The notes: a model not told the origin generated them from the letters alone. DNA of 64,000 bases from Octopus bimaculoides (GCF_001194135.2 NC_069002.1:13063708-13127707); one strand, 5' to 3'; shown: positions 6,673 through 60,714, counted from the stretch's first letter. Program-made: numbers and translations.

Positions 6673-7055
6673 GGAGGCGCAATGGCCCAGTGGTTAGGGC
6701 AGCGGACTCGCAGTCATAGGATCGCGGTTTCGATTCCCAGACCAGGCATTATGAGTGTTTATTGAGCGAAAACACTTAAAGCTCCACGAGGCTCCGGCAG
6801 GGGATGGTGGCGAACCCTGCTGTACTCTTTTACCACAACTTTCTCTCATTCTTACTTCCTGTTTCTGTTGTGCCTGTAATTCAAAGGGTCAGCCTTGTCA
6901 CGCTGTGTCACGCTGAATATCCTCGAGAACTACGTTAAGGGCACACGTGTCTGTGGAGTGCTCAGCCACTTGCACGGTAATTTCACGAGCAGGCTGTTCC
7001 GTTGATCGGATCAACTGGAACCCTCGACATCGTAAGCAACGGAGTGCCAACAACA
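6673..7055 (+). mobile_element. tRNA-derived SINE, family B (representative full copy)
   Basis: GGAGGCGCAATGGCCCAGTGGTTAGGGCAGCGGACTCG...GGTTTCGATTCCC head, (CAA)n end. Other copies at about 7955-8248(-), 36570-36755(-), 43990-44368(-), 55539-55927(-), 59845-60041(-). Confidence 0.9.
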
Positions 7056-9819
7056 AATATCTTGGTAGTTTTGTTATCCAGTGAGGTATATATACACCAG
7101 AAAAACCAGGAGACTGGCCCTGTACTGCTTACAGAGTAATGTAGATTAACCATGATGAAAAGTGTTCCAGCCTTGACTATCCCATCTTTTTAGGTTATGT
7201 ACTTACTACTTTACTTAAGCCCTTCACTCTCTCTGGAGTAGAAACCCTCGATGAATTTTCTCCAGTTTTTGAGCCTGGGTTGCTCTTTTCTGCTCCTCGC
7301 CAGAGGACTTCCTCTCTGTGTCTTGTTGGTTTTCTATTGTCATTGATGCTTCAGTAACTTCGAAATTTTTTTTTAAGGTAGATGTCTTCTCATCATCATC
7401 ATCGTTTAACATCCACCTTCCATGCTGGCACAGGTTGGATGGTTTGACAGGAGCCAGCCAGGTAGAACACTGCAACAGACTTCTGTGTCTGTTTTGGCAC
7501 GGTTTTTACAGCTGGATGCCCTTCCCTAACACCAACCACCTAGCAGAGTGGGCCAAGTGCTTTTTACATGGAACCAGCTCAGGCAGGGTCAATTTTGACA
7601 TGCTGTTCCTAACACCAACCACTTTACAGTGTGAACTGAGTGCTTTTTACATAGCACCAGCACTGGCAGGGTCACCAAGTAACTTGCAAGACTAAGAACC
7701 TTTGAGAGGGCATTGAAGGTCTTAGTCCTATCTAAACCCATTTTTACCTCTGGGAAGCAATGGGCTTTATCCTTTGATCTGTCCAGCATGGGAGACTCTA
7801 CAAGGAGACTGTATTCCACTGGCATAGCACCCAGGGTCACTGAGGTACAGAAGCCACCAAACTGAAACAGGGACCTTCTCTAATTACTGTTTTATGGGTA
7901 ACTGCCATTTTTTAAATGACAAATAAATTACAATATATTTTGCCCTTTTCGCCCTTTCAAAGCCTAGCCAGGCTCATGGGCCCGGTTTCCCGGTTTCTAA
8001 GGTGTATGTGTTCCCCAGCTGGATGGGACGCCAGTCCATTGCAGCGTTACTCGAGAAACAGGAAGAAAGAGTGAGAGAAAGTTGGGGCGAAAGAGTACAA
8101 CAGGGGTCGCCACCACACCCTGCTGAAGCCTCGTGGAGCTTTAGGTGTTTTCGCTCAATAAACACTCACAACGCTTGGTCTGGGAATCGAAACCGCGATC
8201 CTCCGTCCGCGAGTCCGCTGCCCTAACCACTGGGCCATTGCACCTCCACACAATATATTTTACCAGTTGTTATGTCACAACAAAACTATTTCATGAGACA
8301 TCGTGTTCTAGAAACTTTTTGAGGAAAAATCTTGTGCCAAATGTTCCCACTTGGCTCTTATGCTGGCAAACCTGCACCCATCTATGATGTTCTTTATGTT
8401 TTGGCTTGGCACCACACGTGTGCGTGTGAATAACTTCGTTGACATGAGACATCTATACTAGCACTGCTGGTACTAGTGCAATCCTCAAAGGAATTGTCAT
8501 TAGTATTTTCTTCCTTTTTTAATATTATTTTGGAATGTCTGTGTCTTTTGAGACAATGCTTTTTTTTGTGTTCTCACTTGTGAATGTCCTGAATGTAATA
8601 ATTCTGATTTTGCAGTTTTCTTTTGAGTTACGTAAAATAAAAATTTTCATTAAAAGAAAAGAACAAACTTTTCTCGTTCTCTACAAACCCTGGGTTGACT
8701 AAATTATGTACTGAACATCAAGCTGTCTGTATGCAACAATCTTCAATTAAAATATTCTGTAAAATAAAAAAATATTCTGTTTTGAAGAGTAGCTTGAAAA
8801 GACACCCAACAAAGACAACAAATATTTTTATCATAGGCACAAGGCCAGAAATTTTGAGGGGAGGGGGGGAGTTAGTTGATTATATTGACCCCAGTAGTCA
8901 ACTGGTACTTATTTTATCAACCTCGAAAGAATGAAAGTCAAAGTTGACATCAGCAGTATTTAAACTCAAAACATAAAACCAGAAGAATATATAAATATCT
9001 ATATATTTATACTCGAATATTCATCATCTGAAAATTTTCAGTCTTTGCTTTTTATACCAAACCCAAGCGGTTTTATTTGTTTATTTGCATCATTATCTCC
9101 AAATCTGTTCACCTGAATTCCTCTGGGTCCCTGGCAAAGGTTTCAAAGTGTAAGTTCAAATCATTTGAGCACTATTAAGTGTTTTCTATACCAGGAATAT
9201 CAGAATCTCATCTGTTAACTCTAATTTACCAAATATGTTCTCAAACACTCTTCACACCCTGTACATATATATGTAACACACTCAGACATACACATACACT
9301 CAGACACACACCACACACATACATGTACAGAGATAAGTATACTTTTTACTCTTTTACTTGTTTCAGTCATTTGACTGCGGCCATGCTGGAGCACCGCCTT
9401 TTAGTCGAGCAATCGACCCCAGGACTTATTCTTTGCAAGCCTAGTACTTATTCTATCGGTCTCTTTTTGCCGAACCGCTAAGTTATGGGGACGTAAACAC
9501 ACCAGCATCGGTTGTCAAGCGAAGTTGGGGGGGACAAACACAGACACACAAACATATACACACACATACATATACATATATACGACGGGCTTCTTTCAGT
9601 TTTCGTCTACCAAATCCACTCACAAGGCATTGGTCGGCCCGAGGCTATAATAGAAGACACTTGCCCAAGGTGCCTCGCAGTGGGACTGAACCCAGAACCA
9701 TGTGGTTGGTAAGCAAGCTACTTACCACACAGCCACTCCTGCGCCTGTATATGTACATATCTATATTATATTATTACAAAAGAAAAGGTCGATAGTAACT
9801 TCAAAGTTTCAGCTTTGTG

Positions 9820-13078: not shown

Positions 13079-15469
13079 CTTTCTCTATTCCCGAGCGTTA
13101 AACTAATACATCCTTTTGTTGTTTACACCACCTGTCCTCGTCTGTTGTTTTTTTCATAAATTCTCCTAGGTATATATACATACATGTACACACATACAGG
13201 TACAAGCATGGCTATGTGGTAAGAAGTTTGCTTTTCGATCACATGGTTCAGGGTTCAGTCCCACTGTATGGAACTTTGGGCAAGTGTCTTCTGCTTAGCT
13301 CTTATGGCCCAAGGCCTTGAGTAGATTTGGTCAACAGAAACTGAAAGAAGCCTGTTGTGTATGTACACACACATTTGTTTGCCTCCCACCAATTTGACAA
13401 CTGTTGTTGGTTCGTTTATGTCCTTGTAATTTAGTGGTTCAACAAAACAAAAGAGAATGACAAAATAAATACCAGGCTTTAAGAAATGTTTTGGCTGCTA
13501 TTTCTAATTTTCGGTGTGTGGTGAAGCAATTCTTGTTGAACCCTAAATTTTAAATTATGTTTATATATTTACCAATAATGGTTTTTTAACACACCGAACT
13601 ACTTGGTAAAATTACTAATTATTAATTAATTAATAATTTTTACCCTATATCTATATATATATATATGTCATCATCATCATCGTTTAACGTCCGCTTTCCA
13701 TGCTAGCATGGGTTGGATGATTTGACTGAGGACTGGTGAAACCAGAAGGCTGCACCAGGCTCCAATCTGATTTGGCAGAGTTTCTACAGTTGGATGCCCT
13801 TCCTAATGCCAACCACTCTGATAGTGTAGTGTCACCTGCACGAAGGCTAGTCAGGCGGTACTGGCAACGGCCATGCTCAAAATGGTGTATTTTATGTGCC
13901 ACCCGCACAAGAGCCAGTCCAGGGGTACTGGCAACAATCTCGCTCGAAAGTCCTTACACATGCCACGGGCACAAGTGCCAGAAAGGCGACGCTGGGTACA
14001 GGTGCCATCACGGTTTCGCCTTCGCTTGCCCCAATAAGTCTTTGCAAGCTGAGTTTCGTGTCCAATGAAGGAGACAACGTTGGCATGGGTGCCAGTCGTC
14101 GATATATATATATATATCATCATCATCATTGTTTAACGTCCGCTTTCCATGCTAGCATGGGTTGGACGATTTGACTGAGGACTGGTGAAACCGGATGGCA
14201 ACACCAGATGGCAACACCTGGGCTGGCTCTTGTGCGAGTGACACATGAGACGCACCATTTTGAGCTTGACCGTTGCCAGTGCCGCCTGGCTGGCCTTCAT
14301 GCGGGTGACACGTAAAAGCACCCACTACACTTTCTGAATGGTTGGCGTTAGGAAGGGCATCCAGCTGTAGAAACACTGCCAAATCAGATTGGAGCCTGGT
14401 GTAGCCATCTGGTTTCACCAGTTCTCAGTCAAATCGTCCAACCCATGCTAGCTTGGAAAGCGGACGTTAAACGATGATGATGATGATGATGATGATATAT
14501 ATATATACATCACATGAAGCTCGCCCCCTCCCACTTATCTCAGGGCTCATAGTCCTGTGAACTCTATGCAAACCTCAATAGTGCAGGTGACACAGAAAAA
14601 ACACCCAGTTCACACTGTAAAACGGTTTGTGTTAGAAAAGGGATCAAGCTGTAAAAACCATGCCAAAGCAGACATTGGGGTCGATGCCATCCTTGGACAC
14701 CTTTGATCCTGTCAAACTTTCCACCATGGAGTATGGACATAAAATGATGAGAATAAAAGATACATAAATGTTTCCACAAGAAGAGTTTTACACACACACA
14801 AACACATGCACAGACACACAAACATATGAACACACACGTCTGAGAGTGTTTCTGTGTGGAAGTGAATGTGGGTGTGCATAACCTAGAAAAGACTGAGAAA
14901 TGTAGAAAAGATAAGGTTGGAATTGTTGTTTAAAAGGCAGAGAAGAGAAGATCTGTGAGATTATTAGAAAAGATAAAGGTGGTGGGGTGAGTTGTGAGAG
15001 GAGAGAGAGAGAGAGATTTAGTTAACATACACAACAATTCCTTAGATAATATTCTCTCTGAAATAACAAACAAGCTGTCAAAGGTACACAAACACACATA
15101 CATATGCATAAATACATACATACATAAATATATATATATATATATATATNNNNNNNNNNNNNNNNNNNNNNNNNNNNNNNNNNNNNNNNNNNNNNNNNNN
15201 NNNNNNNNNNNNNNNNNNNNNNNNNNNNNNNNNNNNNNNNNNNNNNNNNNNNNNNNNNNNNNNNNNNNNNNNNNNNNNNNNNNNNNNNNNNNNNNNNNNN
15301 NNNNNNNNNNNNNNNNNNNNNNNNNNNNNNNNNNNNNNNNNNNNNNNNNNNNNNNNNNNNNNNNNNNNNNNNNNNNNNNNNNNNNNNNNNNNNNNNNNNN
15401 NNNNNNNNNNNNNNNNNNNNNNNNNNNNNNNNNNNNNNNNNNNNNNNNNNNNNNNNNNNNNNNNNNNNN

Positions 15470-16746: not shown

Positions 16747-18729
16747 CGGGTTTCTTTCAGTTTCCCTTTATCAAAACCACTCACGAGTCTTTGGTTGGCC
16801 TCGTGAAAGACCCTTGCCCAAGGTGCTACACAGCAAGCTTCTTACGACACAGCTACGCCTGTGCTTATGATAGGATTTTTTTAAACATCGAATGGCTATG
16901 AGGGCCTGTGCAAATGAAATAGGGATCAAAGGGGTCCATAGGTAAAAAATAAAAAAAATAGGTCCTGGTTGCTCTGATGGACAGACATGAGATCTTGTGT
17001 TAGGGAAGCTGTTCTGATGTCATTTATGAGGAAGAGAAATTCAAAGTGAAAGAGAAAGTTGTTAATGGGTGATTCCATCACATTTGTAATATTGGGTGTG
17101 TCTGTGGTAGGATGACAAATGTCAGGGTCAGAGAATGGGAAGCGTTGCAGTAGGATTCCAAAGAATATTGCATTTTGTTTCGTTTTTTTTTTTTCTGAGG
17201 TTGATAAAATAAAATACCAGATAAGAAATGCCTTGTTTGTGGATTTGGTAGATGGAAACAGAGAGAATCCTGAGAGCATTACACTGTAGAACACTGCCTC
17301 AATATATCTCAAGCAAACTGTGCCACAATGGAAAGAGCAAATGTGAAAATGATAATAGTGACGGTGCTGATGATGATAGTGATGGTGATGATACAAAATG
17401 ATAAAAGTTGGCAAATTTCTATAAGTTGCAGGGTAGATAAGAATACTGATCATTTTTAGCAAAGCCTTTTGTCAAGGAGATAGAGAAAGAGAGATATATA
17501 AAAAAAAATATCTATGATAGCACTGAGAATATAGGTTTCCTCCTTAGAATCTGCTTATTTTTGCATCTAACTTTTATTTACACGAGCTGGAATATGAAAT
17601 TGTTTTCGTCTAGGCAGGAAGCCAGGTCATACAACTGTATGAGAGAGCACTGATATTAATAAAGAATTTCTTTATCCTTTCCTCTCAGTCTTATCCTAAC
17701 AGTGGACCCCATTAATAAAATTTATTCCTTCTCTCTTTTAAGTGTATATATATATATATATAAACGATAATAAGAGTGAAAAAACTACAGAAGGCTTGTG
17801 TTACATGGTTAAAGTATATATTTAAATTATGTCAGAAAAATGTAATAAAAATGTAATAAAAATGTTATAAAATCTTTTTGGTATATAAACATTATATTTT
17901 GAGAAATAACCGGTTTCGTGTTGTCTTTTCAAATTTCTCTACTTCATTGTGTCGTAAAACAAATGATATATAAGCATATGCATGTATATCTACATCTACA
18001 TGTATATATAGATGCATATTTGGGTACAGGACGTTAGAAAAATGAACGGGAGCATAAAAAACAAAATGGACTTTGTTTACAGACAACAGAACGAACACAT
18101 AGGAAAACAAACAAGCCACTTGGAATTATTCCTTCATTAGCTGCCTCTATTCTAAAACTAGGCGTTTTGAAGATAAGGCAGGGCACTCTTAGAGTAGTTT
18201 CTTCCTGAGTAGTAGATTAACCTAATATGTACATACATACACATATATACACACACACATATATATACATACACACACACACACACACATACATACACAC
18301 ACACACACACACATTATTAATAAAGCTGGAAAGGCATCAAACAAACTGTTACTCAGAGTTTCACATTCTGATTTGTCAGACAGTTTTGGTGTGTACACAC
18401 ATACATTCTTTTACTTGTTTCAGTCATCTGGCTGCGGCCATGCTGGAGCACCACTTTTAGCTGAACAAATCAACCCCAGAACATATTCTTTGTAAGTTTA
18501 GTACTTATCCTACCAGTTCCTTTTGCTGAACTGCTAAGTTACAGGGACGTAAACACCAACTTCGGTTGTCAAGTGATGATGGGGGGGGGGGACAAACACA
18601 GACACACAAACATATACACACCAAATCCACTGACGAGGCTTTGGTTGGCCCAAGGCTATAGTAGAAGACACTTGCCCAAGGTGTCATGCAGTGGGACTGA
18701 ACCCAGAACCATGTGGTTGGTAAGCACTG

Positions 18730-35935: not shown

Positions 35936-36123
35936 GTAAGTTCAGACCAATTCCTGCTTATCTTTGTCTGTCTATCTGTCTGTTAGTCTGCCTCTCTTTT
36001 AATCTGTGTGTCTTTTGACATGACTCCCATCACTATCGCATACAGATAGGAACAGATAAACATGAAACTCATAGATCCAACTTCTCTGTTCTTTTTTTTA
36101 AGTTCCTATCATTATTTTCTCTC

Positions 36124-36197
36124 TGCACTGATGAGTACTTTGATAATTTTCAAATTCAAATATGAATTTATATCTATGTTCGAAACAATTGTATGCA
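36124..36197 (+). ncRNA. Type I hammerhead ribozyme fold (HHR-A), sense strand of FUCA intron 3
   Basis: TGCA-CTGATGA-GTAC...GTTC-GAA-ACAATTGT-A-TGCA: full core, G10.1-C11.1 pair, palindromic stem III, GUA triplet; long stem II with an internal AAATTCA/TGAATTT hairpin. Confidence 0.68.
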
Positions 36198-36324
36198 TGA
36201 ATAAACTTCATACAACTTTTTAACATCTTATCTCCTCCATTTTTGACAAATATGATTGGATTTGTCGAACTTCATTCCATAAATTAATCATACACTTAAT
36301 ATATATAATTTAACCCTCGGCAAC

Positions 36325-36383
36325 GGAGTATTTGGTCACTGATGAAGATGGATTAAATCTGAAATCAGCGCTGATATGACTCC
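36325..36383 (+). ncRNA. Type I hammerhead ribozyme fold (HHR-B), sense strand of FUCA intron 3
   Basis: GTCA-CTGATGA-AGAT(GGATTAA)ATCT-GAA-ATCA(GCGC)TGAT-A-TGAC: full catalytic core, three stems, AUA cleavage triplet; stem I extends (GGA/TCC) across a 7-nt bulge. Confidence 0.8.
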
Positions 36384-38036
36384 ATCTCACTTGTCGTAGG
36401 GAGGGAGTCTGTCTCCCTTGTCAGCTTTTAGAAAAGTGCTCTCACGTGGCTAAGAGTTGTTTTGACTCTTATTTCTAGCAATGCTAGTTCTTATTAGCAC
36501 CCCCTGTCACTTTAGTGACCACTGTACTCATTGGCTGTGTGTATATATATATATATATATTATTTATGCACCCTTTTAAAGCCTAGCCAGGCTCATGAGC
36601 CCGGTTTCCCGGTTTCTATGGCATATGTGTTCCCCCCAGCTGGACAGGATTCCAGTCCATCACAGCGTTACTCAAGAAACAGGAAGAAAGAGTGAGAGAA
36701 AGTTGGGGCGAAAGAGTACAACAGGGGTCGCCACCCACCCCCTGCCGGAGCCTCANNNNNNNNNNNNNNNNNNNNNNNNNNNNNNNNNNNNNNNNNNNNN
36801 NNNNNNNNNNNNNNNNNNNNNNNNNNNNNNNNNNNNNNNNNNNNNNNNNNNNNNNNNNNNNNNNNNNNNNNNNNNNNNNNNNNNNNNNNNNNNNNNNNNN
36901 NNNNNNNNNNNNNNNNNNNNNNNNNNNNNNNNNNNNNNNNNNNNNNNNNNNNNNNNNNNNNNNNNNNNNNNNNNNNNNNNNNNNNNNNNNNNNNNNNNNN
37001 NNNNNNNNNNNNNNNNNNNNNNNNNNNNNNNNNNNNNNNNNNNNNNNNNNNNNNNNNNNNNNNNNNNNNNNNNNNNNNNNNNNNNNNNNNNNNNNNNNNN
37101 NNNNNNNNNNNNNNNNNNNNNNNNNNNNNNNNNNNNNNNNNTATATATATATATATGAAGAATAATAATAAATGGAGCAAAACGCGTATAATCAATAAGT
37201 TCCTTTAATTCCTACATATGTTTCAAAATTTATGTGCACTCTATGTGCTGGCCAAAAAGACACTCAGGTTTCAGTTGCACAAAATTTCTTGATTGTATTA
37301 AGAACAATGAAAACTTAAAAACTTTGCATAGACCTCTCAGCCGGTTTTGCCATGCCTTTGGCAAAATTTGATGCAGATTCTCTGCTCAACTTTCTCTCTC
37401 ACGGTCAATGTGATGATCACATGCTACACACCTTCCTTCCAAGCACTGCTGTAAACGGTGGAAGTGAGCTAGAATGTTAAAACTTAGTGCACATGCACAG
37501 CAGAGTTCAAGGTCAATCTGTGCCAAGCAGCTTCACTCTCTGTGCTTTAGCTTTGTTACTATAGCAACAGTCCAGATACTTATTAATCAGACCATGTATA
37601 GATACTTATTAATCAGACCATGTATGTACTTGGTAGAAATTTTTGATAAGAATATTCCACAAGTATTCCTTGTGTTGGTGTCTCTATTTATATTCAGTAA
37701 CTAGGAAATTCTCTATATTTATTCGCCTAGACCGCCAGTGATCCACACCAAAGTTATGGTGGTTCACAGCAAGTCGTATATCCTACCATATTGTGTAGCT
37801 TAATGCAGTTAAAAGTTAATTTATATTTGGTATTCTTTGAAGTTCTCTTCAATAATTTTGTGGAACATCTGGAAAATATTGTGCATCACTCTCGTAAAAG
37901 ACAATCTGAATAGCATTAAAAAAATAACTTTTTCATTTGATTCTTTATCTTTGTGTGTGTGTGTGTGTCCATCTATCCGTCCGTCTGTCCTCAGTGTTTC
38001 TTTCCTAAATAACTATGTATTTCAATATGTCCTTAG

Positions 38037-43813: not shown

Positions 43814-45086
43814 GTAAGAATACTTCCTTTCATTATATTCATTTGTCTGAAGTTGTTGTTTTTGTTGTTTAGCCCAGGTCAGCCATCATTTAGCTGACAT
43901 AGTGTACCTTGCAAAACATGTAGCAATGTGCCATTCATACTTTATAAGACAGTAGAATAATTCAACGGTGTGGAGGGCATATACATATATGTTGTTGGCA
44001 GTCCGTCGCTTACGACATCGAGGGTTCCAGTTGATCCGATCAATGGAACAGCCTGCTCGTGAAATTAACGTGCAAGTGGCTGAGCACTCCACAGACACGT
44101 GTACCCTTAACGTAGTTCTCGGAGATATTCAGCGTGACACAGTGTGACAAGGCTGACCCTTTGAATTACAGGCACAACAGAAACAAGAAGTAAGAGTGAG
44201 AGAAAGTTGTGGTGGAAGAGTACAGCAGGGTTCGCTACCATCCCCTGCCGGAGCCTCGTGGAGCTTTATGTGTTTCTGCTCAATAAGCACTCACAACGCC
44301 CGGTCTGGGAATCGAAACCGCTATCCTATGATTGCGAGTCCGCTGCCCTAACCACTGGGCCATTGCGCNNNNNNNNNNNNNNNNNNNNNNNNNNNNNNNN
44401 NNNNNNNNNNNNNNNNNNNNNNNNNNNNNNNNNNNNNNNNNNNNNNNNNNNNNNNNNNNNNNNNNNNNNNNNNNNNNNNNNNNNNNNNNNNNNNNNNNNN
44501 NNNNNNNNNNNNNNNNNNNNNNNNNNNNNNNNNNNNNNNNNNNNNNNNNNNNNNNNNNNNNNNNNNNNNNNNNNNNNNNNNNNNNNNNNNNNNNNNNNNN
44601 NNNNNNNNNNNNNNNNNNNNNNNNNNNNNNNNNNNNNNNNNNNNNNNNNNNNNNNNNNNNNNNNNNNNNNNNNNNNNNNNNNNNNNNNNNNNNNNNNNNN
44701 NNNNNNNNNNNNNNNNNNNNNNNNNNNNNNNNNNNNNNNNNNNNNNNNNNNNNNNNNNAAGCACCCACTACACTCTCTGAGTGGTTGGCGTTAGGAAGGG
44801 CATCCAGCTGTAGAAACTCTGCCAAATCAGATTGGAGCCTGGTGTAGCCATCTGGTTTCACCAGTCCTCAGTCAAATCGTCCAACCCATGCTAGCAAGGA
44901 AAGCGGACGTTAAACGATGATGATGATACGACGGGCTTCTTTCAGTTTCCGACTACCAAATCCACTCACAAGGCTTTGGTCGGCCCGAGGCTATAGTAGA
45001 AGACACTTGCCCAAGGTGCCAAGCAGTGGGACTGAACCCGGAACCATGTAGTTGGTAAGCAAGTTACTTACTACACAGCCACTCTA

Positions 45087-45438: not shown

Positions 45439-45769
45439 ACTTGCTCTCTCTTTCTATCTCTCTTTTGCATCTATCTGTTTCTCTTTTCTCTCTCTCTCTT
45501 TATCTATCTATCTATCTGTCTGTCTGTCTACGCATTTATACAAAGACAAATGGATATTTGTATGTATATATAACACACACACACACACATATATATATGT
45601 ATGTATGTATGTATATGTATTAATTGACATGTACAGTATTATATATCCATTACAGACAATCTAACTAATTTGTTTCACATTGGGGTTCGATGGGGTGTTA
45701 GATAACAGCTCAATTATTTAACCCTACACTCTTCAGAGATGGCAGTTATAGAAGAAAATATGGTGACTG

Positions 45770-55286: not shown

Positions 55287-56863
55287 CTGAAATTAAAAAT
55301 AATAAAAATAGATTAAAAAATAATTGAAGTTAAATAAAGACATAATAAAATGAATTATTAGCATTGGAAGTAGTGTTAATCCTTTAGCATTTAAACTGGC
55401 CAAAATATTCTAGCTGTTTTTGTCCAAGCCAGCCAGATCTGGCCTCTTATACCTTACCCTACAATGTCATTCTAAAACTAAACAATCACATCATTGAAAT
55501 CTCAAAGCCACGAGATACTGCATGATCAATCCAAAACGTGTTGGCACTCCATCGCTTACGACGTTGAGGGTTCCAGTTGATCCGATCAACGGAACAGCCT
55601 GCTCGTGAAATTAACGTGAATTAACGTGCAAGTGGCTGAGCACTCCACAGACACGTGTACCCTTAACGTAGTTCTCAGGGATATTCAGCGTGACAGTGTG
55701 ACAAGGCTGACCCTTTGAATTACAGGCACAACAGAAACAGGAAGTAAGAGTGAGAGAAAGTTGTGGTGGAAGAGTACAGTAGGGTTCGCCACCATCCCCT
55801 GCCGGAGCCTCGTGGAGCTTTAGGTGTTTTCGCTCAATAAACACTCACAATGCCCGGTCTGGGAATCGAAACCGAGATCCTATGACCACGAGTCCGCTGC
55901 CCTAAACACTGGGCCATTGCGCCTTCACTTGCAACAGAATAATCTGAATGCTAAAGAGTTAATACAAAAAGCTGATCTTTATAACCAATGGGTGTCTTGT
56001 TAAAACATTGCATGCTTGTTATTAACATCGAGAAATCTTTTCATTCAGGCACTTGGTGTCTAAAAGGACACACATAGACCATAGCAGACGAGAATTGCCT
56101 GTCATGGGCACTGGAACTCCAACTTCACATGATTTCATTCAATTGGAAATCATCAGTGGGAGAGGTGTCATGACAAATAACTAATTTTTAATAAACTTGC
56201 TGGCTATTTGCGACTTCAGAGTCTAAAAAGATGCTGATGCTTTATATATCATAGTAGCAAGATTTGACTGGTATGTGGTAACCAGATACCTCACACTGAT
56301 TTCCAATAGACTGAAATCATGCGATATGGGAGTTCTGGTGCCCATGACAGACTATTCTTGTCTGCTATGATCTATGTGTGTGCAAAATTACTAAGTAATG
56401 GGGACGTAATCAAACGAGGACCAGTTGTCAAACAACAATGGTGGGGCCAATCACAAAGAAACACACACATCTTTATCTACATATATATCATAATCACTTA
56501 GACACATCAGATTCTGTCAAACCGTCCAATCCATACCAGCATTAAATGACGACGATGATGATATATCTGTCTACTTATCAATATATGTGTGTATAAATAT
56601 ATATACACACACACACACACAATGGGCTTCTAGACAATTTTCATCATCAACGAAATTCACTCACATGGCATTGGTTAGCCCAGGGCTATAATAGAAGAAA
56701 CATGCCCAAGGTGAAGTGGGACTGAACTCAAAACCACATAGTTACAAACCAAGCTTCCTATCTGCACAGCCATTTCCTGCACCAATTATACTTGGATAAT
56801 TTCCATAAATCAAACAAAATATTACGAAACTCTAAAAGAATCTCTAAAATTTCCGGTACTTAC

Positions 56864-59677: not shown

Positions 59678-60714
59678 CTACAAAAGAGGGGAGGGACGAA
59701 AATCAATTTACAATATTCATTTTACAACTACTATTAATAAGGCCCGTGAGCTTGTAAGGATCGTTAGCATGTTGGACAGAATGCTTAGCGACGTTTTCTT
59801 TCGTGTTCGGAGTTCAAATTCTGCGGATATCGACTTTCAACCTTTGAAATACAGGTACAACAGAAACAGGAAGAAAGAGTGAGAGAAAGTTGTGGTGGAA
59901 GAGTACAGCAGGGTTCGCCACCATCCCCTGCCGGAGCCTCGTGGAGCTTTAGGTGTTTTCGCTCAATAAACACTCACAGCGCCCGGTCTGGGAATCGAAA
60001 CCGCGAGTCCGCTGCCCTAACCACTGGGCCATTGCGCCTCTACTCTTTCGGATATTCTTGTGACAAACATCGCCATAATTTTGCCTTGTTTCCTTCAACT
60101 TGTAGCCACTTTCATCATAAATTCTATCGTATGGTTCATAGTTTCTAAACGAATTCTTTGAAAATGATGGCAAAGGTAAAGAATACGTACACCCGGTGGT
60201 TAGGGTTAGGTCGAAAACGAGTGGTGTGCGTATTCTTTACCTCATCCAAAATCATATATTAAAACGACTGTCAGCATTTATCTTATACTCGTTTCGATCA
60301 TTCGATACGGCCATGCTGGGGTACTGCTTTGAAGGATTTCAGTCGAACAAATCGATCCGAGTACTTTTTTTAAAGCCCTGTACTTATTCTATCAGTCTCT
60401 TTTGCCGAACCGACAAGGTACGGGGACGTAAACAAACCAAAAATCGGTTGTCTTAAGATTAATGCTTCAACGTCTTCATTCCAAATGGTCACTAGGTCCA
60501 TAAATATAACCACGTATGAATGTTTTGATGGCATTTAAAGTGTGTATATAAATTTACTTTACTTTTATAATTGCATTTTCACTCTTTAAAAATCTAAACA
60601 ATTAATAAATCAAATTTTTAGAAAGAAAATAACATAATTTTCGTTCTTAAAGACATTATTTTTGCTCGGGTACTCTGCAATAAAACATGAGATAAATGAT
60701 AATTTAGTACGTAC

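Follow-up and report, generated by a model that had tools for sequence, protein, structure and literature searches.

What is the hammerhead-like motif that lies in the third intron of an octopus fucosidase gene: a working ribozyme, the remains of a mobile element, or an accident of AT-rich sequence? The window, by which we mean the whole 64,000-nucleotide stretch of Octopus bimaculoides DNA analysed here, is 100% identical to O. bimaculoides chromosome CM046622.1 and carries on its + strand a GH29 alpha-L-fucosidase (FUCA) gene, recognised by its fucosidase motifs. Seven exons of this gene were recovered in the window, with GT-AG introns throughout, and the 398 residues of the spliced product are residues 1-398 of the O. 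bimaculoides RefSeq protein XP_014782036.1. The motif, HHR-B, lies on the sense strand 390 nt downstream of exon 3 (Table 1). A preliminary description had read here an apparently intact hammerhead ribozyme in sense orientation. Every element that it named is present in its place when the sequence is read, and the type I architecture, the intact catalytic centre, the strand and the location in fucosidase intron 3 are supported by the sequence and the gene model. We propose, with a probability of roughly 0.6, that HHR-B and a second motif upstream of it, HHR-A, are dispersed and probably retroelement-derived type I hammerheads that ride in the intron as neutral passengers and for which self-cleavage is plausible.

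The host locus has several features of its own. Nine runs of N lie across positions 5794-44758 of the window (2521 bases in total); the 386-N gap in intron 3 begins 373 nt downstream of HHR-B and may hide a further element. A SINE-like dispersed repeat (36571-36754) is inserted in intron 3 beside a (TA)n microsatellite, and copies of it occur at 7952-8132, 59862-59940, 6788-6866 (-), 55733-55811 and 44179-44257, with 87-91% identity among copies; ARAGORN found no tRNA-like head in the repeat. The annotation of the O. bimaculoides locus includes an SLD5 gene that runs on the other strand and overlaps the upstream part of the fucosidase range. Octopus has at least two alpha-L-fucosidase paralogues, which in O. 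bimaculoides and O. vulgaris lie on one chromosome several hundred kb apart, and the Argonauta hians locus contains three exon 1-like segments.

Table 1. Positions in the window of intron 3, of the two hammerhead motifs and of the segment between their predicted cleavage sites
Feature	Position	Strand	Remarks
Intron 3, alpha-L-fucosidase gene, GT...AG	35936-38036	+	contains assembly gap 36756-37141
HHR-A, second type I hammerhead motif, intact core	36122-36200	+	R1 23.4 bits, E ~2e-4
Segment between predicted cleavage sites, 183 nt	36194-36376	+	includes spacer 36201-36332
HHR-B upstream of core	GGAG, UAUUUG, then GGUCA 36334-36338	+	sequence read
HHR-B stem I 5' strand, GGUCA	36334-36338	+	pairs with 36377-36381; aligned to R1 stem I
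HHR-B core C3-A9, CUGAUGA	36339-36345	+	invariant in O. sinensis and O. vulgaris
HHR-B helix II, AGAU/AUCU, 4 bp, A10.1-U11.1, 7-nt loop GGAUUAA	36346-36360	+	
HHR-B G12 A13 A14 (GAA)	36361-36363	+	
HHR-B helix III, AUCAGCGCUGAU, in the monomer AUCA/UGAU 4 bp with GCGC loop	36364-36375	+	
HHR-B predicted scissile bond, 3' of A36376 (H17, triplet AUA)	36376-36377	+	R1 alignment
HHR-B stem I 3' strand, UGACU, then CC	36377-36381	+	

What does the motif itself contain? The 59 bases 36325-36383 (+) read GGAGUAUUUGGUCA-CUGAUGA-AGAU(GGAUUAA)AUCU-GAA-AUCAGCGCUGAU-A-UGACUCC. The topology is that of type I, in which loops close helices II and III and helix I is open, and the catalytic centre is complete: it comprises CUGAUGA, GAA, the A15.1-U16.1 pair (A36364-U36375) and an H17 other than G (A36376). 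This centre, identical in O. vulgaris and O. sinensis, conforms to the CUGANGA / GAAAY / RUH pattern that the field takes as its criterion (PMC7229834 supplement). Helices I, II and III comprise 5, 4 and 4 bp in O. bimaculoides, where helix I contains the wobble pair G36334-U36381 and the strands of helix II are AGAU 36346-36349 and AUCU 36357-36360; in O. vulgaris and O. sinensis they comprise 7, 5 and 4-5 bp. The one departure from the expected pairs is the first of helix II, which is A-U, as had been remarked, rather than G-C (A36346-U36360 in all three species). G-C at 10.1-11.1 is described as second in conservation only to the pair 15.1-16.1 (PMC3088659; PMC4209133); it is nonetheless not invariant, and natural U-U variants are active.

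We compared this intron with orthologous loci in O. sinensis (L001) and O. vulgaris (L004), and with paralogues in O. vulgaris (L002) and O. bimaculoides (L006) and an Argonauta gene (L003), all located by protein search and cluster look-up. The 5' 630 nt of intron 3 are ~92% identical across the three orthologues, and the core and all three helices of HHR-B are unchanged among O. bimaculoides, O. vulgaris and O. sinensis; the differences lie elsewhere. T36333 is G in both sister species, which turns the bulge of stem I into a continuous 7-bp helix I, and in loop II both have T where O. bimaculoides has G (36350). At its centre, helix III has GCGC in O. bimaculoides; O. vulgaris has GCAC there and O. 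sinensis CCAC. The proposed bulge contact and the palindrome are therefore specific to O. bimaculoides. The contact between the stem I bulge and loop II that the preliminary description had invoked is not supported by this comparison: with the three species aligned, the bulge occurs in O. bimaculoides alone, loop II is altered in the others and no conserved partner was identified. Two further claims hold in part. The GGA/UCC extension of stem I is present, but it overlaps the G36334-U36381 wobble and is not conserved. The 12-nt palindrome is perfect in O. bimaculoides but not in its sister species, and a monomer can make only 4 bp of it, with a GCGC loop. Cleavage through a palindrome-paired dimer would need a second copy of HHR-B; none is present in the orthologous introns, which are gap-free, and the O. 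bimaculoides intron has its 386-nt gap.

Do models of the hammerhead family recognise the motif? We built an Infernal covariance model, R1, solely from four animal hammerheads, coral Amil224, mussel Mg353 and axolotl Ax353 and Ax330, all of which self-cleave experimentally and whose constructs and cleavage sites are printed in the supplement of PMC7229834, and a decoy model, R2, with R1's helices and composition and a scrambled core. R1 scores HHR-B at 15.9 bits in O. bimaculoides (E ~0.04) and at 23.3 and 22.4 bits in the O. vulgaris and O. sinensis orthologues (E ~3e-4), whereas the decoy reaches a maximum of 14.6 bits over the same 125 kb; the O. bimaculoides copy is thus only 1.3 bits above the best decoy match. 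Rfam 15 was run on the window, on stretches of 201, 121 and 65 nt and on 118 kb of related loci; it reported no hammerhead family, and neither HHR-B nor HHR-A was matched to one even when short stretches were scanned at E <= 10. The Infernal search that had been suggested for this motif has a mixed outcome, with a match to R1 and none to an Rfam hammerhead model. We considered Rfam's silence as evidence against HHR-B and dropped it: since the purpose-built R1 recovers the motif, the Rfam hammerhead models are insensitive here. Pair counts over the eight octopus matches of R1 (94.9% paired; covariation 0.81 versus 0.27) are circular, because the covariance model itself chose and aligned them. 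The hammerhead label for HHR-B is supported, as far as sequence comparison goes, at the level of the motif and of the family model, with three exceptions, namely the A-U pair at 10.1-11.1, the lack of a Rfam hammerhead match and the lack of a conserved tertiary contact.

The sole Rfam matches in the HHR-B region are weak C/D snoRNA families (8-17 bits), and with its intronic, sense-strand position the motif could be cast as an intronic C/D box snoRNA in which CUGAUGA is the C box, the CUGA at 36359 and 36371 are the D' and D boxes and GGUCA/UGAC is the terminal stem. These scores fall far under the gathering thresholds of 37-60 bits, however, and the candidate is only ~48 nt long, compared with 68-82 positions in the matched eukaryotic C/D models. 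C/D snoRNAs are usually at least 70 nt long. Moreover, a C' box is absent, the terminal stem and the D box are out of register by 2 nt, and with only 8 nt between D' and D a second guide would not fit. Box spacing and length led us to reject the snoRNA reading of HHR-B, which we regard as scarcely credible.

Could the match instead be a chance resemblance, produced by an AT-rich, hairpin-prone intron that happens to meet a minimal hammerhead descriptor? Minimal-motif hammerhead searches are known to give many false positives (PMC6155905), a warning that applies here, and the Rfam result, the A-U pair at 10.1-11.1 and the small excess of the O. bimaculoides score over the best decoy would all be in keeping with chance. 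A strict type I descriptor (stems of at least 4, 4 and 4 bp, A15.1-U16.1, H17 not G) finds HHR-B as its sole match in the 64 kb, both strands included, and has no match in 2 x 40 Mb of simulated sequence (Markov-1 and Markov-3, window composition); relaxed to stems of 3, 3 and 3 bp, it has 4 and 6 matches in the Markov simulations. The analytic chance estimate is 6.6e-9 per position and strand, and 539 decoy cores, composition-matched and made by permuting the letters of the core, yield 0.0019 hits per 152 kb when scanned over that length of real octopod DNA. Simulation, analytic estimate and decoys agree on ~1e-3 matches per window with a lenient descriptor. The same descriptor would be expected to yield ~35 matches in a 2.7-Gb genome, which leaves room for chance, but a motif as compact as HHR-B is expected at only ~3e-11 per position and strand, or ~0.15 per genome. 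The descriptor count alone is improbable in one window and not decisive for a genome-wide scan.

Other evidence argues more directly against coincidence. A relaxed animal-type descriptor with the true core has 6 matches in the 152 kb, with 3 loci in the window, as against a mean of 0.009 hits and a maximum of 1 for the 539 decoy cores (~0.01 expected in the window), while the core word itself is merely 1.8 times commoner than the decoy words. Hammerhead-shaped motifs are strongly enriched, more than 100-fold over the 539 decoy cores, in the octopus DNA studied. In addition, the orthologues of HHR-B score far above the decoy maximum, and HHR-A is an independent match on the same strand 183 nt away. 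We consider chance resemblance distinctly unlikely.

We also asked what the predicted folds say about HHR-B. The hammerhead fold is at -5.0 kcal/mol and the predicted minimum at -16.9 kcal/mol; in the latter, AUCAG from helix III pairs with the core CUGAU. On their own, helices II and III have little stability (each hairpin -0.6 or 0 kcal/mol), and the isolated helix III hairpin is unstable at 37 C. When the four active hammerheads were folded alike, however, their hammerhead folds lay 2.3-7.4 kcal/mol above the predicted minimum; in matched folding HHR-B lies 5.6 kcal/mol above it in O. bimaculoides and 8.1 kcal/mol in O. vulgaris. The coral hammerhead is predicted to have the same kind of competing pairing as HHR-B, and a Schistosoma construct is predicted to fold as a hammerhead. 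Because active hammerheads have a like deficit, the energy deficit does not discriminate, and the energy argument against HHR-B was dropped after this control. A pre-miRNA-like hairpin was likewise rejected for the region, as its stem is weak and interrupted and its outer stem needs a 33-nt segment that is absent from the other species. That segment (36381-36413), 33 nt that were inserted here or deleted in O. sinensis and O. vulgaris, directly follows the stem I strand UGAC(U) of HHR-B and is flanked by CTC(A/C)CTTGT direct repeats; in O. bimaculoides it supplies the partner for an outer stem with 36314-36324.

HHR-B is not alone in the intron. HHR-A is predicted to be cut 3' of A36193 (H17), 183 nt upstream of the predicted HHR-B cut and on the same strand. 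Its stem I is UCUGCA/UGCA(u)GA, its core CUGAUGA occupies 36128-36134 and its GAA 36182-36184. Helix II (GUAC...GUUC) keeps G10.1-C11.1 and contains a U-U mismatch and a 39-nt insert, and helix III, ACAAUUGU at 36185-36192, is a palindrome that forms 2 bp with an AAUU loop. In both sister species the essential G12 of HHR-A (36182) is replaced by A, and O. sinensis additionally has C in place of A2.1 (36127). HHR-A is intact in O. bimaculoides only, because G12 is mutated in both sister species, and judging from these substitutions it appears to be already disabled in the O. vulgaris/O. sinensis lineage. The alignments place both motifs in the common ancestor of the three species. The paralogues L002 and L006 and the Argonauta gene L003 contain no homologue of the motif-bearing segment; the paralogous intron 3 of O. 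bimaculoides spans only ~370 nt, and its similarity to the intron studied here is confined to the two ends of the latter, so that the motif-bearing middle was either gained here or lost there. An exon 3-sized ORF search for other octopod contigs gave distant matches only (73-79% identity).

How do the two motifs evolve relative to the intron around them? Variable sites among the three species number 4 of 47 in HHR-B and 7 of 79 in HHR-A, close to the intron background of ~8-10% (42/515). In the strict 48-nt motif, none of the 34 paired or core sites varies, compared with 3 of the 12 free sites (Fisher p = 0.014), and two of these three changes fall in the CpG-bearing tetranucleotide; set against the intron background of 42/515, the absence of paired or core change is not significant (p = 0.06-0.10). 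By contrast, of the 132 sites in the spacer between the motifs (36201-36332) only 2 vary among the three Octopus species, where the rest of the intron has ~10%, and the interval between the cut sites has 6 in 184, where the rest of the aligned intron has 39 in 377 (p = 0.003). The low variation of the spacer may reflect low CpG content or a constrained element, and it is unexplained by pure neutrality. In the preliminary description, conservation of the core beyond the flanking intron was to separate a functional motif from a neutral retroelement relic. Among three close Octopus species such conservation is not seen (4/47 in HHR-B versus 2/132 in the spacer), which points to a neutral relic and not to a domesticated regulator. 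Variation at the background rate in both motifs, together with the decay of HHR-A in one lineage, fits passengers.

Is HHR-B an active ribozyme all the same? If it folds, helices I-III would assemble around CUGAUGA/GAA, G12 (36361) would activate the 2'-OH of A36376, and the chain would break between A36376 and U36377, leaving a 2',3'-cyclic phosphate and a 5'-OH; activation by G12 and these two products are established hammerhead chemistry. HHR-B would then cut nascent FUCA pre-mRNA within intron 3, lowering or timing the mRNA, or, together with HHR-A, would free a possibly circularised 183-nt RNA (36194-36376 in O. bimaculoides). Activity would be in keeping with a centre and helices preserved in all three species, where only loops have changed, with the placement of two same-strand motifs within the monomer range of retrozymes (~170-400 nt), and with the fact that no part of the intron varies less than the segment that would be released. 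Thermodynamics permits it as well, the fold gap of 5.6 kcal/mol lying within the range of validated hammerheads, and helix III with its 4 bp exceeds the 1-2 bp typical of animal motifs that need a dimer (PMC4209133). However, HHR-B is not conserved above background, it has no conserved tertiary loop contact, and it combines A10.1-U11.1 with AU-rich helices II and III whose hairpins are marginal. Double cleavage cannot be conserved as a function, since G12 of HHR-A is gone from O. vulgaris and O. sinensis. Furthermore, the 183-nt unit folds like shuffled sequence (minimum free energy -24.8 kcal/mol, z = 0.12) and is not unusually structured, and intron 3 is spliced normally in both annotated isoforms. 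A functional ribozyme of this kind is, in our estimate, possible but unlikely; on the passenger reading that we prefer, any cleavage of FUCA pre-mRNA would likely be slow, with no role that we would assign to it. A narrower proposal is that HHR-A and HHR-B form a domesticated module freeing the 183-nt RNA, with the central 132 nt under purifying selection, and we think it very unlikely. Were it true, it would represent an intron-derived, ribozyme-processed and possibly circular noncoding RNA in a cephalopod, with HHR-B as an A10.1-U11.1 variant kept across Octopus.

We return to the reading that we prefer, that of neutral, probably retroelement-derived passengers, and ask to which class of element the pair might belong. 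Type I hammerheads of this kind are dispersed across animal genomes by ribozyme-bearing retroelements, namely Penelope-like elements and non-LTR retrozymes. In most animals, type I motifs occur in tandem repeats or in the pseudo-LTRs of Penelope-like elements (published work), and the giant squid genome is reported to have 235 Rfam Hammerhead_1 hits and to contain Penelope elements (PMC6962438). Local alignment of the 183-nt unit to either flank gives a similarity no better than that of shuffled sequence, and there is thus no recognisable tandem repeat; a search for long-period tandem repeats found none, and there are no direct repeats flanking the hammerhead motifs. Further copies of the motif-bearing sequence were found neither in ~180 kb of octopod DNA nor in JGI metagenomes (0 matches), and neither intron 3 nor its neighbourhood contains an RT or GIY-YIG remnant. 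The features of a non-LTR retrozyme are consequently lacking, as there are no homologous tandem repeats and the unit is not strongly self-complementary; so are those of a Penelope-like element, in the form of an RT plus GIY-YIG ORF and pseudo-LTRs, and conservation well above the flanks, the mark of a domesticated intronic hammerhead, is not found among the three close Octopus species. With no tandem homology, other copy or RT/GIY-YIG remnant found, a retroelement origin of the pair is our inference.

Several other hammerhead-like motifs were noted in the window and at the related loci. An 85-nt inverted repeat (56068-56152/56297-56381; 86% complementary, 144-nt spacer) has one hammerhead-like motif per arm: that at 56116-56163 (-) scores 18.2 bits with R1 and has a U-U pair at 10.1-11.1, and that at 56288-56333 (+) scores 10.2 bits and has a core without 'GA', its GAAAUCAUGCGAUAUGGGAG resembling GAAAUCAGCGCUGAUAUGAC of HHR-B. 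On the antisense strand, a weak motif at ~45655-45745 (-) lies a short way downstream of the final exon of the fucosidase gene; its core is CUGAAGA, its helix II consists of wobble pairs throughout and its loop spans 46 nt. An O. vulgaris counterpart occupies the orthologous place (L004, core at 14230 (-)). A Pfam scan of ORFs beside these other window motifs (45.7-46.4 kb and 56.0-56.5 kb) was negative. The best R1 match (31.5 bits, E ~1e-6) is antisense in intron 3 of the O. vulgaris paralogue, at L002 11747-11792 (-); its core has decayed, with UUGACAA in place of CUGAUGA and one A missing after GAA, and it is clearly the relic of a canonical type I hammerhead. Finally, a compact motif with a 9-bp stem I at L002 18111-18158 (+) lies within a ~236-nt self-complementary, MITE-like repeat present at several loci, and related copies occur at 18322-18387 of the window and at L001 9043-9146.

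What would these observations mean? One more copy is in itself unsurprising, because type I hammerheads are widespread in animal genomes and often intronic. Nonetheless, hammerhead motifs are hereby documented in Octopus, where the cephalopod literature that we found gave a Rfam count for the giant squid only. HHR-B is an A10.1-U11.1 variant that has been kept in nature and whose palindromic helix III is unusually long, and a small model built from validated sequences recovers motifs that the Rfam hammerhead models miss. Should the pair process fucosidase pre-mRNA or free the conserved 183-nt spacer, we know of no earlier description of a functional intronic hammerhead outside the amniotes.

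Finally, the octopus motifs can be set beside three known systems. The first comprises the retrozyme hammerheads of animals such as Mytilus (Mg353) and Acropora (Amil224) (PMC7229834), with which HHR-B shares the type I topology, CUGANGA/GAAAY/RUH, a core preceded by ...UCA, a cleavage site followed by UG, a helix II of 4 bp, a helix III that is palindromic and a low GC content; the central GCGC of helix III is common to HHR-B and the mussel ribozyme. Likewise, the monomers of animal non-LTR retrozymes measure ~170-400 nt, and the octopus cut sites are 183 nt apart on the same strand. HHR-B differs from the retrozyme hammerheads in having A10.1-U11.1 instead of G-C and a longer helix III of 4 bp. 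Unlike retrozymes, the octopus motifs and their flanks are not homologous repeats, and the sequence looks single-copy in the ~180 kb searched; retrozyme RNAs, which accumulate in linear and circular form, are rod-like, whereas the octopus 183-nt segment is not highly structured.

The minimal hammerheads in the pseudo-LTRs of Penelope-like elements (PMC4209133) are, like the octopus motif, dispersed type I motifs of animal genomes whose palindromic helix III suggests dimeric action; in both cases single copies are expected to be weakly active, and Rfam-type models often miss such motifs. The octopus locus differs from these elements in having no RT/GIY-YIG ORF and no pseudo-LTR nearby. The third system comprises the amniote intronic hammerheads of RECK, CTCL and DTNB (Rfam HH9/HH10; PMC6155905). 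In amniotes, conservation of the motifs far exceeds that of the sequence around them and the canonical loop-loop contacts are retained, neither of which is true of HHR-B, which evolves at the background rate and has so far been seen within the genus Octopus only. What the two share is their setting and probable origin: the amniote hammerheads are sense-strand type I motifs within the intron of a protein-coding gene and, like the octopus motif, are probably derived from retroelements.
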